Notes: a model not told the origin generated them from the letters alone. A stretch of DNA of 64,000 nucleotides from Sminthopsis crassicaudata (GCF_048593235.1 NC_133620.1:48734852-48798851), one strand, 5' to 3'. Positions 1,146 through 40,928 are shown, numbered from the stretch's first letter. Program-made: numbers and translations.

Positions 1146-1458
1146 CGAACTTTGGTGAAATCCTAAACACAGATCTCACTCCTATGACATCACCAATGAG
1201 GTCCCCTACTAGTCCTCAGACTTGTTCTGAGTCCCTCCTCTTTCCCCTCCGCCCACTTGCTCCAGAATACTGGCCTGAGCCAGAACCGCGGAGAATTTGC
1301 TAGAGAAGGCGAGTTCTCTGTCCTAATTAGTCAGAGCAAGCAGAGGGGGCGGAATTGCTCCAAGGGTGGGTGCCAGCTCTCGGCTGTTCTGGAAGGCGCC
1401 CGAAGGTTCCGGGGCAGAGGAGAAGGGAGGAGGCGGGGCTGGGGCAGCTGCATAAATA
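1146..1458 (+). promoter_or_regulatory. Heat-shock promoter of copy 1 (distal HSE and CCAAT degenerate)
   Basis: Proximal gap-type HSE gTTCt gGAAg gcgcc cGAAg gTTCc (1386-1410), GC boxes and TATA-like CATAAATA (1451-1458). Distal HSE reads cGAAc tTTGg tGAAa (1146-1160). The inverted CCAAT reads ATTAG instead of ATTGG. Confidence 0.85.
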
Positions 1459-1662
1459 GGCAGGACCTGAGCTGGCCCGGCACATCCCAGCTGAGCATCC
1501 ACAGAGAGCCAGAGCTCCAGCCGCAGCAGAGAGGCACACGACCGGTCCGCGTCCTTCCTCCAGCGAGACCGAGAGCATCCGAACGTCAGCCAGCCACCTT
1601 TCTCCTGAGACTTCTGCTCCGCACTCCCGGGAAAGAGCAAGGGAAGGAGTCCTGCCGCGATC

Positions 1663-3594
1663 ATGTCTGCTCCCAAGGGCACGGCNNNNNNNNNNNNNNN
1701 NNNNNNNNNNNNNNNNNNNNNNNNNNNNNNNNNNNNNNNNNNNNNNNNNNNNNNNNNNNNNNNNNNNNNNNNNNNNNNNNNNNNNNNNNNNNNNNNNNNN
1801 NNNNNNNNNNNNNNNNNNNNNNNNNNCGCGGCGAAAAACCAGGTGGCCATGAACCCGCAGAATACGGTGTTTGACGCCAAGCGGCTGATCGGCCGCAAGT
1901 TCTCCGACCAGGTGGTGCAGTCCGACATGAAGCACTGGCCCTTCCAGGTGGTGAGTGAGGCCGGGAAGCCCAAGGTGCGGGTGTCCTACAAGGGGGAGAG
2001 CAAGTCCTTCTACCCCGAGGAGATCTCGTCCATGGTGCTGAGCAAGATGAAGGAGACTGCCGAGGCCTATCTGGGCCAGCCGGTCAGCAACGCGGTCATC
2101 ACGGTGCCGGCGTACTTCAACGACTCCCAGCGCCAGGCCACCAAGGACGCCGGGGCCATAGCCGGCCTCAACGTGCTGAGGATCATCAACGAGCCCACGG
2201 CGGCGGCCATCGCCTACGGGCTGGACAGGTCGGGCGCAGGAGAAAGGAACGTGCTCATCTTCGACCTGGGCGGGGGCACCTTCGATGTGTCCGTGCTCAC
2301 CATCGACAACGGCATCTTCGAGGTGAAAGCCACGGCGGGGGACACCCACCTGGGCGGGGAGGACTTTGACAATCGCCTGGTGAACCACTTCGTGGAGGAG
2401 TTTAAGCGCAAATACGGGAAGGACCTGAGCCAGAACAAGCGCGCCCTGAGGAGGCTGCGCACAGCTTGTGAAAGGGCCAAGCGCACCCTGTCCTCCAGCA
2501 CCCAGGCGAACCTGGAGATCGATTCCCTGTACGAGGGCACGGACTTTTACACCACGATTACTCGGGCTCGCTTTGAGGAGCTGTGCTCAGACCTCTTCAG
2601 GGGGACCCTGGAGCCGGTGGAGAAGGCCCTGCGGGATGCCCGCATGGACAAGAGCCAGATCCAGGACATCGTGCTGGTCGGGGGCTCCACCCGCATCCCC
2701 AAGGTGCAGAAGCTGCTCCAGGACTTCTTCAATGGCAAGGAGCTGAACAAGAGCATTAACCCGGACGAAGCGGTGGCTTACGGGGCGGCCGTGCAGGCGG
2801 CCGTGCTGATGGGAGATAGGTCCGAAAAGGTACAGGATCTCTTGCTCCTCGACGTGACGCCCCTGTCCCTGGGTCTCGAGACGGCAGGGGGGGTGATGAC
2901 AACGCTGATCCAGAGGAACTCCACCATCCCCAGCAAGCAGACGCAGACCTTCACCACGTACTCGGACAACCAGCCGGGAGTGCTGATCCAGGTGTACGAA
3001 GGCGAGCGAGCCATGACCCGGGACAACAACCTGCTGGGTCGCTTTGAGCTGTCGGGCATCCCTCCCGCGCCTCGGGGGGTCCCCCAGGTCGAGGTCACCT
3101 TTGACATCGACGCCAACGGCATCTTGAACGTCTCGGCCACGGACAAAAGCACGGGCAAGGCCAACAGGATCACCATCACCAACGACAAGGGCCGGCTGAG
3201 CAAGGAGCAGGTGGAGAGGATGGTGCGGGAGGCGGAGAAGTACAAGGCCGAAGACGAGGCTCAGCGGGAAAGGGTGACTGCCAAGAACTCGCTGGAGTCC
3301 TATGCCTTCCAGGTCAAGAGTGCCATGCGGGAGGACGGCCTTCGAGACAAGGTCCCGGAGGAAGACAAGAGGAAGGTGCTGGACAAGTGCGAGCAAGTCC
3401 TTTCCTGGCTGGAAGCCAACCAGCTGGCCGACAAGGAGGAGTTTGAGCACCAGAAGAAGGAACTGGAGAGGGTGTGCCAGCCCATCATTGCCCGGCTCTA
3501 CCAGGCACCTGGTTCTCAGGGAGGGAACAGCTGTGGCGCCCAGGCCCGCCATTCCCATCCCACCTCTGGGCCCACCATTGAAGAGGTGGATTAG
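1663..3594 (+). CDS. HSPA6: Heat shock 70 kDa protein, HSPA6/Hsp70B'-like, copy 1 (643 aa, intronless)
   Basis: HSP70 motifs [30 protein letters not shown] and C-terminal EEVD. HSPA6-like traits: [50 protein letters not shown] and 643-aa length. 141 N (47 codons, in frame) at 1686-1826. Carries E584 where the other copies have D. Confidence 0.92.
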
Positions 3595-38369: not shown

Positions 38370-40301
38370 ATGTCTGCTCCCAAGGGCACGGCNNNNNNNN
38401 NNNNNNNNNNNNNNNNNNNNNNNNNNNNNNNNNNNNNNNNNNNNNNNNNNNNNNNNNNNNNNNNNNNNNNNNNNNNNNNNNNNNNNNNNNNNNNNNNNNN
38501 NNNNNNNNNNNNNNNNNNNNNNNNNNNNNNNNNCGCGGCGAAAAACCAGGTGGCCATGAACCCGCAGAATACGGTGTTTGACGCCAAGCGGCTGATCGGC
38601 CGCAAGTTCTCCGACCAGGTGGTGCAGTCCGACATGAAGCACTGGCCCTTCCAGGTGGTGAGTGAGGCCGGGAAGCCCAAGGTGCGGGTGTCCTACAAGG
38701 GGGAGAGCAAGTCCTTCTACCCCGAGGAGATCTCGTCCATGGTGCTGAGCAAGATGAAGGAGACTGCCGAGGCCTATCTGGGCCAGCCGGTCAGCAACGC
38801 GGTCATCACGGTGCCGGCGTACTTCAACGACTCCCAGCGCCAGGCCACCAAGGACGCCGGGGCCATAGCCGGCCTCAACGTGCTGAGGATCATCAACGAG
38901 CCCACGGCGGCGGCCATCGCCTACGGGCTGGACAGGTCGGGCGCAGGAGAAAGGAACGTGCTCATCTTCGACCTGGGCGGGGGCACCTTCGATGTGTCCG
39001 TGCTCACCATCGACAACGGCATCTTCGAGGTGAAAGCCACGGCGGGGGACACCCACCTGGGCGGGGAGGACTTTGACAATCGCCTGGTGAACCACTTCGT
39101 GGAGGAGTTTAAGCGCAAATACGGGAAGGACCTGAGCCAGAACAAGCGCGCCCTGAGGAGGCTGCGCACAGCTTGTGAAAGGGCCAAGCGCACCCTGTCC
39201 TCCAGCACCCAGGCGAACCTGGAGATCGATTCCCTGTACGAGGGCACGGACTTTTACACCACGATTACTCGGGCTCGCTTTGAGGAGCTGTGCTCAGACC
39301 TCTTCAGGGGGACCCTGGAGCCGGTGGAGAAGGCCCTGCGGGATGCCCGCATGGACAAGAGCCAGATCCAGGACATCGTGCTGGTCGGGGGCTCCACCCG
39401 CATCCCCAGGGTGCAGAAGCTGCTCCAGGACTTCTTCAATGGCAAGGAGCTGAACAAGAGCATTAACCCGGACGAAGCGGTGGCTTACGGGGCGGCCGTG
39501 CAGGCGGCCGTGCTGATGGGAGATAGGTCCGAAAAGGTACAGGATCTCTTGCTCCTCGACGTGACGCCCCTGTCCCTGGGTCTCGAGACGGCAGGGGGGG
39601 TGATGACAACGCTGATCCAGAGGAACTCCACCATCCCCAGCAAGCAGACGCAGACCTTCACCACGTACTCGGACAACCAGCCGGGAGTGCTGATCCAGGT
39701 GTACGAAGGCGAGCGAGCCATGACCCGGGACAACAACCTGCTGGGTCGCTTTGAGCTGTCGGGCATCCCTCCCGCGCCTCGGGGGGTCCCCCAGGTCGAG
39801 GTCACCTTTGACATCGACGCCAACGGCATCTTGAACGTCTCGGCCACGGACAAAAGCACGGGCAAGGCCAACAGGATCACCATCACCAACGACAAGGGCC
39901 GGCTGAGCAAGGAGCAGGTGGAGAGGATGGTGCGGGAGGCGGAGAAGTACAAGGCCGAAGACGAGGCTCAGCGGGAAAGGGTGACTGCCAAGAACTCGCT
40001 GGAGTCCTATGCCTTCCAGGTCAAGAGTGCCATGCGGGAGGACGGCCTTCGAGACAAGGTCCCGGAGGAAGACAAGAGGAAGGTGCTGGACAAGTGCGAG
40101 CAAGTCCTTTCCTGGCTGGATGCCAACCAGCTGGCCGACAAGGAGGAGTTTGAGCACCAGAAGAAGGAACTGGAGAGGGTGTGCCAGCCCATCATTGCCC
40201 GGCTCTACCAGGCACCTGGTTCTCAGGGAGGGAACAGCTGTGGCGCCCAGGCCCGCCATTCCCATCCCACCTCTGGGCCCACCATTGAAGAGGTGGATTA
40301 G
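38370..40301 (+). CDS. HSPA6: HSPA6-like HSP70, copy 5 (643 aa)
   Basis: Same as copies 2-4 except K347R (AAG>AGG at 39409). Confidence 0.92.
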
Positions 40302-40928
40302 ATGAGGGACTTTGGCTGGCTAGGGGATTGTGAGCTAATGAACAACAGGTGCACGTGCTGCTAGTGTCTCCAGAGGAAGCGTCAGCATTCTGTTCTTTTC
40401 CCAACTGCTATCTCTGGACAGCTTTGTTGTGAGCAGGTCCGCCTTTGGGCATCCTGACTTTTTGACTTTTTCTTTCAACTCTTCCCTTCTCAACAGGGGA
40501 AGCAAAAGATTGCTTATTTCGTTCTTTCTCTGACTGCTGTCAATATGTATGTTTTCTTATTTAAATCTGTTTCAATAATTTATGATAAAAAATTTGTATT
40601 AATTATTTAGAATATTTCAATAAACTGTAAAAAGTTATTACTAATTTGTCTCTGCTTCCAATTAAGTATCATTAGAGCCAGGATAGACATATAGTTTTTT
40701 AAAAGTCATAATTTAAAAATCCATTACTATGGTAACTTTTTGCTTTATATTATTTCCATTTTAAAATATGCCATTCTCTCAACTAGTGAGTTATGGATTT
40801 AAAAAGGGGGGGGGCAGGAGAATGATAACAGTTTAGCAAAACAGTGAACACATCAAGTCTCACTCATGAGCTATTCACACCTACATTCCCCTAAACTTTG
40901 AAATTAGGGCAGTGCTCACTCACTTCTT

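Follow-up and report, generated by a model that had tools for sequence, protein, structure and literature searches.

The question raised by this locus is how five tandem genes can stay almost letter for letter the same when the DNA that separates them has for the most part drifted apart. The window that we analysed, 64,000 nucleotides of the genome of Sminthopsis crassicaudata, the fat-tailed dunnart, carries five intronless HSP70 genes of 643 codons in a head-to-tail array (Table 1). One unit, a gene with its spacer, measures ~9 kb and the spacers are 6.7-7.9 kb long; homology between the units starts at ~421 and ends inside the tRNA-Leu gene at the distal side. The array is very probably under non-allelic gene conversion, which in one event apparently copied an entire spacer as part of a 10.9 kb tract.

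The array genes are cytosolic HSP70 genes. The single-exon ORF is uninterrupted in all five copies, the protein gives a full-length match to the Pfam HSP70 profile PF00012 (E = 1.9e-238, 793 bits against a curated cut-off of 20.6; residues 56-614 aligned to positions 49-599 of the 599 in the profile) and its C-terminus, PTIEEVD followed by the stop codon (3574-3594 in copy 1), carries the EEVD motif of cytosolic HSP70. In RefSeq, five consecutive dunnart proteins, of which three are identical, fall into one cluster; like the ORF they are 643 aa long, and they are named HSPA6 or HSPA6-like. The top solved relative is human HSPA1A (1117 bits), and the scores of the nucleotide-binding domain lie close together (HSPA1A 662.6, HSPA6 657.9 and HSPA1L 652.3 bits). 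The protein tree leaves guinea-pig HSPA6 and Trichosurus HSPA1A in an open polytomy with the marsupial groups. No FCGR exon was recognised within the window, where the neighbours of the array are tRNA genes; a tRNA cluster of similar kind presumably adjoins FCGR/HSPA6 in human. The only ORFs of at least 120 aa in the 64 kb are the HSP70 genes, ORFs in frames overlapping them and low-complexity sequence. One such ORF of 311 aa, in spacer B1, was rejected as a spurious product of a (TCTG/TCTC)n microsatellite at 14039-14751.

Table 1. Features of the HSP70 array, numbered from the first letter of the window; signed positions are relative to the ATG.
Feature	Position	Strand	Remarks
tRNA-Gly(GCC)	286..358	-	just outside the first repeat unit
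Perfect three-unit heat-shock element, copies 2-5	11049..11063; also 19644, 29311, 37902	+	-468
Homogenised block, copy 1	1428..3730	+	-235..+2067; homogenised in 5/5 copies
Homogenised block, copies 2-5	11282-13584, 19877-22179, 29545-31847, 38135-40437	+	
TATA-like ATAAATA	1452..1458; also 11306, 19901, 29569, 38159	+	-211; pattern match
HSP70 CDS copy 1	1663..3594	+	643 codons; ancestral residue E584; N mask 1686-1826
HSP70 CDS copy 2	11517..13448	+	N mask 11540-11680
HSP70 CDS copy 3	20112..22043	+	N mask 20135-20275
HSP70 CDS copy 4	29780..31711	+	N mask 29803-29943
HSP70 CDS copy 5	38370..40301	+	private R347 at 39409; N mask 38393-38533
AATAAA poly(A) signal	3913..3918; also 13767, 22361, 32030, 40619	+	+2250
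B-type patch, 3' flank of copy 1	3884..4050	+	as copies 2 and 4, with 1 private difference
Spacer A1	3595..11516	.	K80 0.162 to A2, 0.153 to A3, 0.218 to B; GC 0.36
Spacer B1	13449..20111	.	readable letters identical to those of B2
Spacer A2	22044..29779	.	K80 0.156 to A3
Spacer B2	31712..38369	.	32655-38392 100% identical to 14397-20134
Spacer A3 (last)	40302..47717	.	private insertions ~44523-44943 and ~45298-46071
Near-identical tract (copy 2, B1, copy 3)	11198..22104	+	equals 29461-40362 (copy 4, B2, copy 5)
tRNA-Leu(CAG)	47644..47726	-	distal end of the array; shortened relics in A1 and A2

A run of 141 Ns occupies nt 24-164 of each CDS, the fifth being missing from the program's list of N runs. 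These runs are in-frame masks of true length rather than gaps of unknown size, since 141 nt make 47 codons, the ORF is open across each of the five, the piece after the run joins profile position 49 to residue 56 with the offset expected, and the resulting length agrees with the 643 aa of RefSeq. The comparison of the coding sequences covers 1791 readable positions, the masked 141 nt being 7.3% of each CDS. Two spacer runs (14172-14334 and 32434-32654) fall within the (TCTG/TCTC)n microsatellite, with readable flanks 225 and 221 nt apart.

Across the readable coding positions, the five copies differ at exactly two, both amino-acid changing and both named in the original prediction. At CDS nt 1040, copies 1-4 have A and copy 5 has G (39409), giving K347R; at CDS nt 1752, copy 1 has A (3414, E584) and copies 2-5 have T (D584). 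The prediction had also held that no synonymous changes were hidden and had proposed setting dS against spacer divergence; none of ~421 synonymous sites differs, whereas 58-73 synonymous differences per pair would be expected at the divergence of the spacers (P < 1e-27). Chance is excluded as the cause of the gene identity. In the readable core of 2162 nt the mean pairwise difference is 1.6 sites (7e-4), some 200-300 times below that of the spacers. GC3 and GC4 of the coding sequences are 0.87 and 0.89, against a spacer GC of 0.35.

The five spacers are colinear homologues, with K80 values of 0.153-0.162 among those of A type and 0.20-0.22 between A and B. The A-type spacers are 85.5-86.2% identical across colinear alignments of 3.5-4.7 kb; counted over aligned columns, A1, A2 and A3 are 14-15% apart and A and B about 18-19%. 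Private insertions of 420-780 nt interrupt the A spacers (~7323-7797 in A1, ~23836-24396 in A2 and the two in A3), some with a poly-A end or a match to a dispersed repeat, and tRNA-Leu relics end at 10178 in A1 and at 28511 in A2. The earlier description of diverged A spacers with private transposable elements is upheld for the divergence and for the private insertions, the repeat family being unnamed.

The homogenised block comprises the TATA box, the predicted 5'UTR, the CDS and the first 135 nt of the 3'UTR, and contains four single-copy differences only (3414, 31742, 40363 and 39409, the last equivalent to 2702 in copy 1), which appear to be private and recent mutations. Variable events per 100 nt number 17.5 at -520..-236, 0 at -235..-1, 0.1 in the CDS and 1.5 from there to +2067, then 8.4 in the remaining 3'UTR and 32.8 further downstream. 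The last upstream difference between copy 1 and the others (1427/1428) precedes the TATA box by 24 nt, in agreement with the predicted onset of identity at ~1430. There is, however, no single sharp edge, the 5' limits being staggered: -235 in copy 1, -319 in copy 4 and, when copy 2 is compared with copies 3 and 5, -479. Confinement of conversion to the transcription unit also lacks support as worded and is at most partly right: the block ends inside the 3'UTR, ~200 nt before the poly(A) signal, and a patch in copy 1 passes the predicted poly(A) site. The transcription unit is itself predicted from the TATA box and AATAAA; of the words sampled from 1200-6000, about half occur in RNA-like runs, roughly the share of the transcript.

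Upstream of the TATA box, the perfect distal heat-shock element (HSE) of copies 2-5 is degenerate in copy 1 (1146-1160, 8 of 9 core bases), where an inverted CCAAT box has also been lost and insertions of 36 nt and 14 nt are present. Proximal pairs of TTCnnGAA and GAAnnTTC lie at ~-270. Judging by these patterns, the array genes are apparently heat-inducible.

Conversion tracts were mapped on the flanks, two coding differences being too few to give a GENECONV-type test any power within the gene. The 3' flank of copy 1 is a mosaic in which positions 3731, 3802 and 3806 group with copies 3 and 5, whereas the patch at 3884-4050 is of B type and differs from copies 3 and 5 by ~15% plus six indels. 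This patch takes in the poly(A) signal and reaches ~115 nt past the predicted poly(A) site. Three mutually incompatible groupings of the flanks occur in blocks: copies 1, 3 and 5 against 2 and 4 at +2068..+2143; copies 1, 2 and 4 against 3 and 5 at -493..-480 and +2221..+2371; and copies 1 and 4 against 2, 3 and 5 at -516..-342.

The original prediction had missed that B1 and B2 are 100% identical over 5738 bp. They belong to the 10.9 kb tract pair, whose two members are told apart by 3 differences in ~10.4 kb of readable sequence (G/T at 13479, an indel of 1 nt at 13906 and A/G at 21151). Hence not every spacer has diverged, and the five copies provide about three comparisons that are independent. 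The pair points to one recent event or to an assembly error. A simple tandem duplication is excluded, as the surrounding A1, A2 and A3 are only ~86% identical; unequal crossing-over and conversion may fit the tract alike.

At the protein level, paralogues cluster within species in three dasyurids, the outcome anticipated for the proposed cross-species tree, with support of 95/91 for the dunnart clade and 99/98 for the devil clade. Copies differ by 0-2 aa in the dunnart, 3-4 aa in Antechinus and 0-5 aa in the devil, whose proteins may derive from more than one assembly or haplotype. Distances between species are 7-24 aa, the dunnart genes being 15-24 aa from those of the other dasyurids. At fourteen sites, a fixed difference separates every dunnart copy from every devil and Antechinus copy, and at least four dunnart-derived residues are common to all five dunnart copies. 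E584 occurs in every devil, Antechinus and diprotodont copy, so D584 is derived, and four of the dunnart paralogues share it although their spacers are 15-22% apart. The contrast between genes and flanks, the mosaic tracts and the within-species clustering, the last for proteins only, are the marks of concerted evolution.

Homogenisation of the genes by conversion is well supported by these results, to which the GC3 of 0.87 in surroundings of 35% GC adds, and the original claim of conversion is upheld by the contrast of invariant synonymous and upstream sites with a highly variable sequence beyond. Purifying selection alone, acting on synonymous sites, mRNA structure and UTRs, might have kept old duplicates identical: few proteins are as conserved as HSP70, K347 does not vary across the 23 marsupial and guinea-pig sequences compared, and selection and conversion act jointly on HSPA1A/B (PMC5865164). 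We give this explanation next to no credence. It is refuted in practice, as had been argued from the outset, by the absence of any difference at 421 synonymous sites, where 58-73 per pair were expected, and at 235 upstream non-coding (promoter-proximal and 5'UTR) positions; both coding differences are non-synonymous, derived residues are common to four or to all five paralogues, and the distance to other dasyurids' genes shows a sequence free to change.

Assembly or polishing could also be suspected, if a consensus of pooled reads had been written over copies that are truly more different or fewer and the second segment of gene, B spacer and gene were a false duplication. The 3 differences of the tract pair are at a level typical of allelic difference, and one published dunnart assembly is ONT-based (PMC13408496), though the method for this record may differ. 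Such an artefact is nevertheless very improbable, as polishing erases small differences and cannot create a jump from ~85% to 100% at defined edges, and copy-specific SNPs survive amid identical context (the four of the block and the alternating 3731/3802/3806). A2, moreover, is distinct from both A1 and A3 and requires genes on both sides, and the independent Antechinus and devil assemblies likewise show several near-identical paralogues; we infer that the assembly is correct. Unequal crossing-over alone, by which whole units are gained and lost and the genes are identical as young copies, is in our view very improbable. Tandem arrays are prone to unequal exchange and B1 and B2 are identical together with their genes, but the process would duplicate spacers too, and A1, A2 and A3 have diverged from one another and from B while the genes that they separate are identical. 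The identical 10.9 kb segments are parted by the unique A2 and neither neighbouring period is duplicated, so that a single unequal crossover cannot give the observed order; the flank mosaics, in turn, require short patches.

Under the gene conversion that we favour, an ancestral unit of ~9 kb between tRNA-Gly and tRNA-Leu genes would have been amplified long ago, after which the spacers would have drifted apart by 15-22%. The genes would have been repeatedly overwritten by one another, in repair templated on a paralogue of the sister chromatid or homologue. Tracts may begin within the gene body, where the copies match perfectly over a long GC-rich stretch, and stop variably in the flanks; this would leave a core of ~2.3 kb identical in all copies with staggered, mosaic edges. 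Because they are identical, the genes could act as homology arms, and one apparently recent event anchored in two of them would have copied the whole B spacer with its flanking genes to a second site in the array. The very high GC3 is probably due in part to a GC bias of the repair that accompanies conversion. It is conceivable, though we hold it doubtful, that the array represents an amplification, specific to dasyurids, by which the dosage of a strictly stress-inducible HSP70 was raised, with selection for several copies of one allele possibly tied to daily torpor or, in such small carnivorous marsupials, to their extreme stress physiology; on this tentative proposal the genes would be portable homology arms by which whole spacers are replaced in events of ~11 kb, and the GC-rich island built by conversion would set where later tracts start and stop, reinforcing itself.

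Concerted evolution of HSP70 genes is already textbook matter and the principle is not new. The dunnart locus is a very clean example of a known process and apparently an undescribed one: no paper describing this dasyurid HSPA6-like array was found, and a RefSeq annotation exists. It is unusually clean in that its homologous spacers, relics of one duplication unit that are 15-22% diverged against no synonymous change in the genes, provide a built-in neutral clock, that the edges of conversion tracts can be read to the base, and that a whole spacer was apparently moved by one event. The locus further documents an HSPA6-like array of four to five copies in dasyurid marsupials. Gene trees of the array proteins will suggest recent species-specific duplication, although the array probably has a long history. 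Mapping of short reads, expression counting and variant calling at these genes will give ambiguous results unless the copies are told apart by the final 200 nt of the 3'UTR, which vary.

Kudla et al., in Mol Biol Evol in 2004, reportedly described HSPA1A/HSPA1B as converted, GC3-rich HSP70 paralogues. In placental mammals these are intronless, stress-inducible paralogues shaped by gene conversion and purifying selection (Hess et al. 2018, PMC5865164), and marsupials have a single HSPA1 gene (PMC5865164). The dunnart genes resemble the pair in being intronless, homogenised by conversion, clustered within species and very high in GC3. Unlike those two genes of the MHC class III region, they are five, head-to-tail and at another locus, with homologous spacers that serve as an internal neutral yardstick and an event that apparently carried a whole spacer.

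Bettencourt and Feder are said to have described, in 2002, concerted evolution by conversion in the Drosophila hsp70 clusters 87A/87C. Dipteran hsp70 clusters have also been reported in Stratiomyidae (PMC3071340). As in the dunnart, where inducibility is predicted, these are multi-copy inducible genes with conversion tracts over the coding region and proximal flanks, and their copy number is thought to be relevant to thermotolerance; unlike the dunnart array, they form inverted and tandem pairs with different spacers and are of unrelated origin. The tandem arrays of trypanosomes, including hsp70 (PMC1855330), are likewise head-to-tail, and in them the coding regions are near-identical and the flanks vary more, but their spacers are short and they are polycistronic without individual promoters, whereas each dunnart copy has a putative TATA and HSE promoter and long spacers.

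By name, a counterpart is human HSPA6, a strictly inducible, single-exon gene of 643 aa that was also duplicated, via non-allelic homologous recombination. Eutherian HSPA6 sits between FCGR genes (PMC6563257), and human HSPA6 and HSPA7 lie in the FCGR2/3 segmental duplication, an 80 kb module of ~94% identity in which HSPA7 is frameshifted (PMC6563257, PMC2266713). The dunnart, unlike human, has five copies, all intact, in units of ~9 kb with flanking tRNA genes.

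The five intronless HSP70 genes of the dunnart array (copies 1-5, head-to-tail, named HSPA6 or HSPA6-like in RefSeq) differ at only two coding positions, as was originally noticed: 39409, where copy 5 carries K347R, and 3414, where copy 1 has E584 and the other copies have D. Both changes are non-synonymous. The comparison covers the 1791 readable positions of each copy and leaves out a masked stretch of 141 nt (7.3% of each CDS). This N run has exactly the same length in every CDS and lies at CDS nucleotides 24-164 (38393-38533 in copy 5). It corresponds to 47 codons; the frame is open across it, the Pfam coordinate after the run is that expected for an uninterrupted protein and the ORF length agrees with the 643 aa given by RefSeq. 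The runs are therefore masks of true length and not gaps of unknown size.

The readable part of the protein (residues 56-643) matched positions 49-599 of the Pfam HSP70 profile with 793 bits, and its C-terminus is EEVD. The closest public proteins form one 90% cluster that includes five consecutive Sminthopsis crassicaudata RefSeq accessions (heat shock 70 kDa protein 6 or 6-like), four of Antechinus flavipes and several of Sarcophilus harrisii. Three of the five dunnart accessions have one sequence, and the resulting three distinct proteins for five genes are consistent with the two amino-acid differences. A tblastn search of the window found no sixth, decayed or fragmentary HSP70 copy.

Coordinates of the HSP70 genes and of the tRNA genes at the borders of the array
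Feature	Position	Strand	Length (nt)	Remark
tRNA-Gly(GCC)	286-358			proximal border of array
HSP70 ORF copy 1	1663-3594	+	1932	
HSP70 ORF copy 2	11517-13448	+	1932	
HSP70 ORF copy 3	20112-22043	+	1932	
HSP70 ORF copy 4	29780-31711	+	1932	
HSP70 ORF copy 5	38370-40301	+	1932	
tRNA-Leu(CAG)	47644-47726			distal border of array

Homogenisation of these genes by gene conversion is well supported by the distribution of differences along the sequence. Counted on a five-way alignment relative to the ATG, variable events per 100 nt amount to 17.5 at -520..-236, 0 at -235..-1, 0.1 in the CDS, 1.5 at +1932..+2067, 8.4 at +2068..+2270 and 32.8 at +2271..+2395. The block that is alike in all five copies (the core, -235..+2067) contains only four differences in 2162 readable nt, each private to one copy, and the pairwise difference is 7e-4. 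At the 421 synonymous sites no difference is seen, against 58-73 expected per gene pair at the divergence of the spacers (P < 1e-27), and the proposed comparison of dS with spacer divergence thus came out in favour of conversion. Protein constraint cannot be the cause, since the 370 non-coding nucleotides of the core are as clean as the coding part. The genes have a GC3 of 0.87 and a GC4 of 0.89 and the spacers a GC content of 35%, as expected if GC-biased repair goes along with conversion, which Kudla and colleagues reportedly established for mammalian Hsp70 in 2004.

The spacers are of two types, in the order A1, B1, A2, B2, A3, and go back to one ancestral spacer; they are its homologous remnants and not DNA of unrelated origin. 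Every pair aligns colinearly over 3.1-4.7 kb, private insertions of 420-780 nt interrupt the alignments, and K80 is 0.153-0.162 among the A spacers and 0.196-0.218 between A and B. The view that near-identical genes sit inside diverged spacers accordingly holds for A against A and A against B (0.153-0.218 overall) but not for B1 against B2, which are 100% identical (14397-20134 and 32655-38392, respectively).

The private insertions and dispersed repeats are probably retroposons, as judged from a poly-A end and dispersed matches. One dispersed repeat, at 70-77% identity, is common to private insertions at different positions of A2 (24218-24401) and A3 (45642-45832), and another occurs in A1 (7684-7763) and in the tail of the window (53848-53926); the private insertion of A3 starts with a 24-nt A run (45298-45325). 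The B spacer is unusually CpG-poor, with an observed/expected ratio of 0.06 (14117-19412, B1); the A spacers have 0.13-0.22 and the gene core has 0.62-0.71. Two ORFs of the B spacers, at 13895-14830 (311 aa) and 32151-33128 (325 aa), were considered as a second gene and rejected; they are without a Pfam match and are products of the (TCTG/TCTC)n microsatellite on which they sit. N runs at 14172-14334 and 32434-32654 lie inside this microsatellite, their readable flanks being 225 and 221 nt apart.

The identity of B1 and B2 is part of a longer tract of 10.9 kb, in which 11198-22104 (copy 2, B1 and copy 3) matches 29461-40362 (copy 4, B2 and copy 5) with three differences in 10.4 kb. A simple tandem duplication with a period of 18.3 kb is ruled out, because the A spacers around the tract are only ~86% identical and neither A1/A2 nor A2/A3 is near-identical. 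In the simplest reading, a single recent event with its anchors in the identical genes copied the whole B spacer by long conversion or double exchange. This duplicate leaves about three independent comparisons among the five genes: copy 1, copies 2/4 and copies 3/5.

The internal evidence argues against over-polishing as the source of the identical genes. Isolated copy-specific SNPs have been kept far from other differences (3414, 39409, 31742, 40363 and the alternating 3731/3802/3806), polishing is unable to turn 85% into 100% identity at sharp edges, and two other dasyurid assemblies have the same near-identity of paralogues. The 10.9 kb duplicate is the part of the array most in need of long-read confirmation.

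The edges of homogenisation are less simple than the sharp boundaries originally envisaged, and no one boundary holds for all copies. Identity with copy 1 does start abruptly near 1430, as had been noticed (the first identical position, 1428, precedes the TATA box by 24 nt), but the place of the 5' edge depends on the copy: copy 1 has it at -235, copy 4 at -319, and copy 2 against copies 3 and 5 at -479. Confinement to the transcription unit is likewise only partly right, as ~200 nt separate the end of the all-copy block from the poly(A) signal and the 3'UTR varies in its last part. The flanks are mosaics, in which groupings of the copies that are incompatible with one tree are arranged in blocks: 135|24 (copies 1, 3 and 5 against 2 and 4) at +2068, +2139 and +2143, 124|35 at -493..-480 and +2221..+2371, and 14|235 at -516, -505, -345 and -342. 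The 3' flank of copy 1 is A-type at 3731-3806, turns B-type at 3884-4050, past the predicted poly(A) site, and then becomes A-type again.

The comparison with other species was made at the protein level, with the masked 55 N-terminal residues left out. Paralogues cluster by species, as the proposed cross-species tree had been expected to give for the genes, with clade support of 95/91 for dunnart and 99/98 for devil. Dunnart copies differ from one another by 0-2 aa, devil copies by 0-5 and Antechinus copies by 3-4, and copies of different species are 7-24 aa apart; at 14 sites a fixed difference separates all dunnart copies from all those of devil and Antechinus, and at least 4 of these sites are derived in dunnart. 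Since all devil, Antechinus and diprotodont copies in the comparison have E584, D584 is derived, and it is present in four dunnart paralogues whose spacers are 15-22% apart. The other residue, K347, does not vary among the sequences compared, and R347 occurs in copy 5 only. Duplicated HSPA6-like proteins that are nearly or fully identical were also seen in other marsupials; Monodelphis has two, ~1 aa apart, and in Trichosurus and Antechinus two accessions each have one sequence (P0025/P0026, P0135, P0129). Homogenisation at the HSPA6-like locus may be general in marsupials.

Common to all copies are a TATA-like ATAAATA at -211, upstream heat-shock elements (HSEs) and an AATAAA at +2250. The distal HSE of copies 2-5, at -468, is perfect and has three units, and their CCAAT box, at -338, is inverted. 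In copy 1, at the array edge, the promoter (1100-1430) is decayed by comparison: the distal HSE is degenerate (8/9 core bases), the CCAAT box is destroyed (ATTGG to ATTAG), and there are two insertions, one of 36 nt and one of 14 nt. As a rule, the end copies of an array are homogenised less, and it fits this rule that E584, the ancestral residue, is retained in copy 1 alone.

Genes for tRNAs mark both ends of the repeat unit. In the last spacer, homology stops inside tRNA-Leu(CAG), at 47713-47717, and truncated tRNA-Leu relics, 79-82% identical, end at 10178 in A1 (region 10095-10204) and at 28511 in A2 (region 28406-28565); the sequence that follows them is homologous to that from ~421-437, just past tRNA-Gly(GCC). 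No such relic was detectable in the B spacers. Downstream of the array, a tRNA cluster (47644-63176) comprises Leu-CAG, Gly-TCC, Asp-GTC, Ile-AAT and Asn-GTT. A comparable set adjoins the human FCGR/HSPA6 region at 1q23, which would support HSPA6 synteny; the 64-kb window itself shows no FCGR gene. The relevant forks of the HSPA6 tree are open, and orthology to eutherian HSPA6 rests on the RefSeq names.

With mammalian substitution rates assumed to be 1.5-4.5e-9 per site per year, which yield rough bounds, we infer that the A spacers would date back ~17-50 My and the split between A and B a little further. The pairwise core difference would place the last core homogenisation well under 0.5 My ago, and the 10.9 kb tract would be younger.

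A literature search on HSPA6 and marsupials returned unrelated papers only and none on a dasyurid array, which therefore appears to be annotated but undescribed. Eutherians have one HSPA6 gene, which the FCGR cluster encloses; in apes it was duplicated along with an 80 kb module (PMC6563257, PMC2266713). Conversion between inducible HSP70 paralogues has been established for HSPA1A/B of placentals (PMC5865164) and for the fly hsp70 clusters (PMC3071340), and the dunnart array adds a new and very clear example of this known process.
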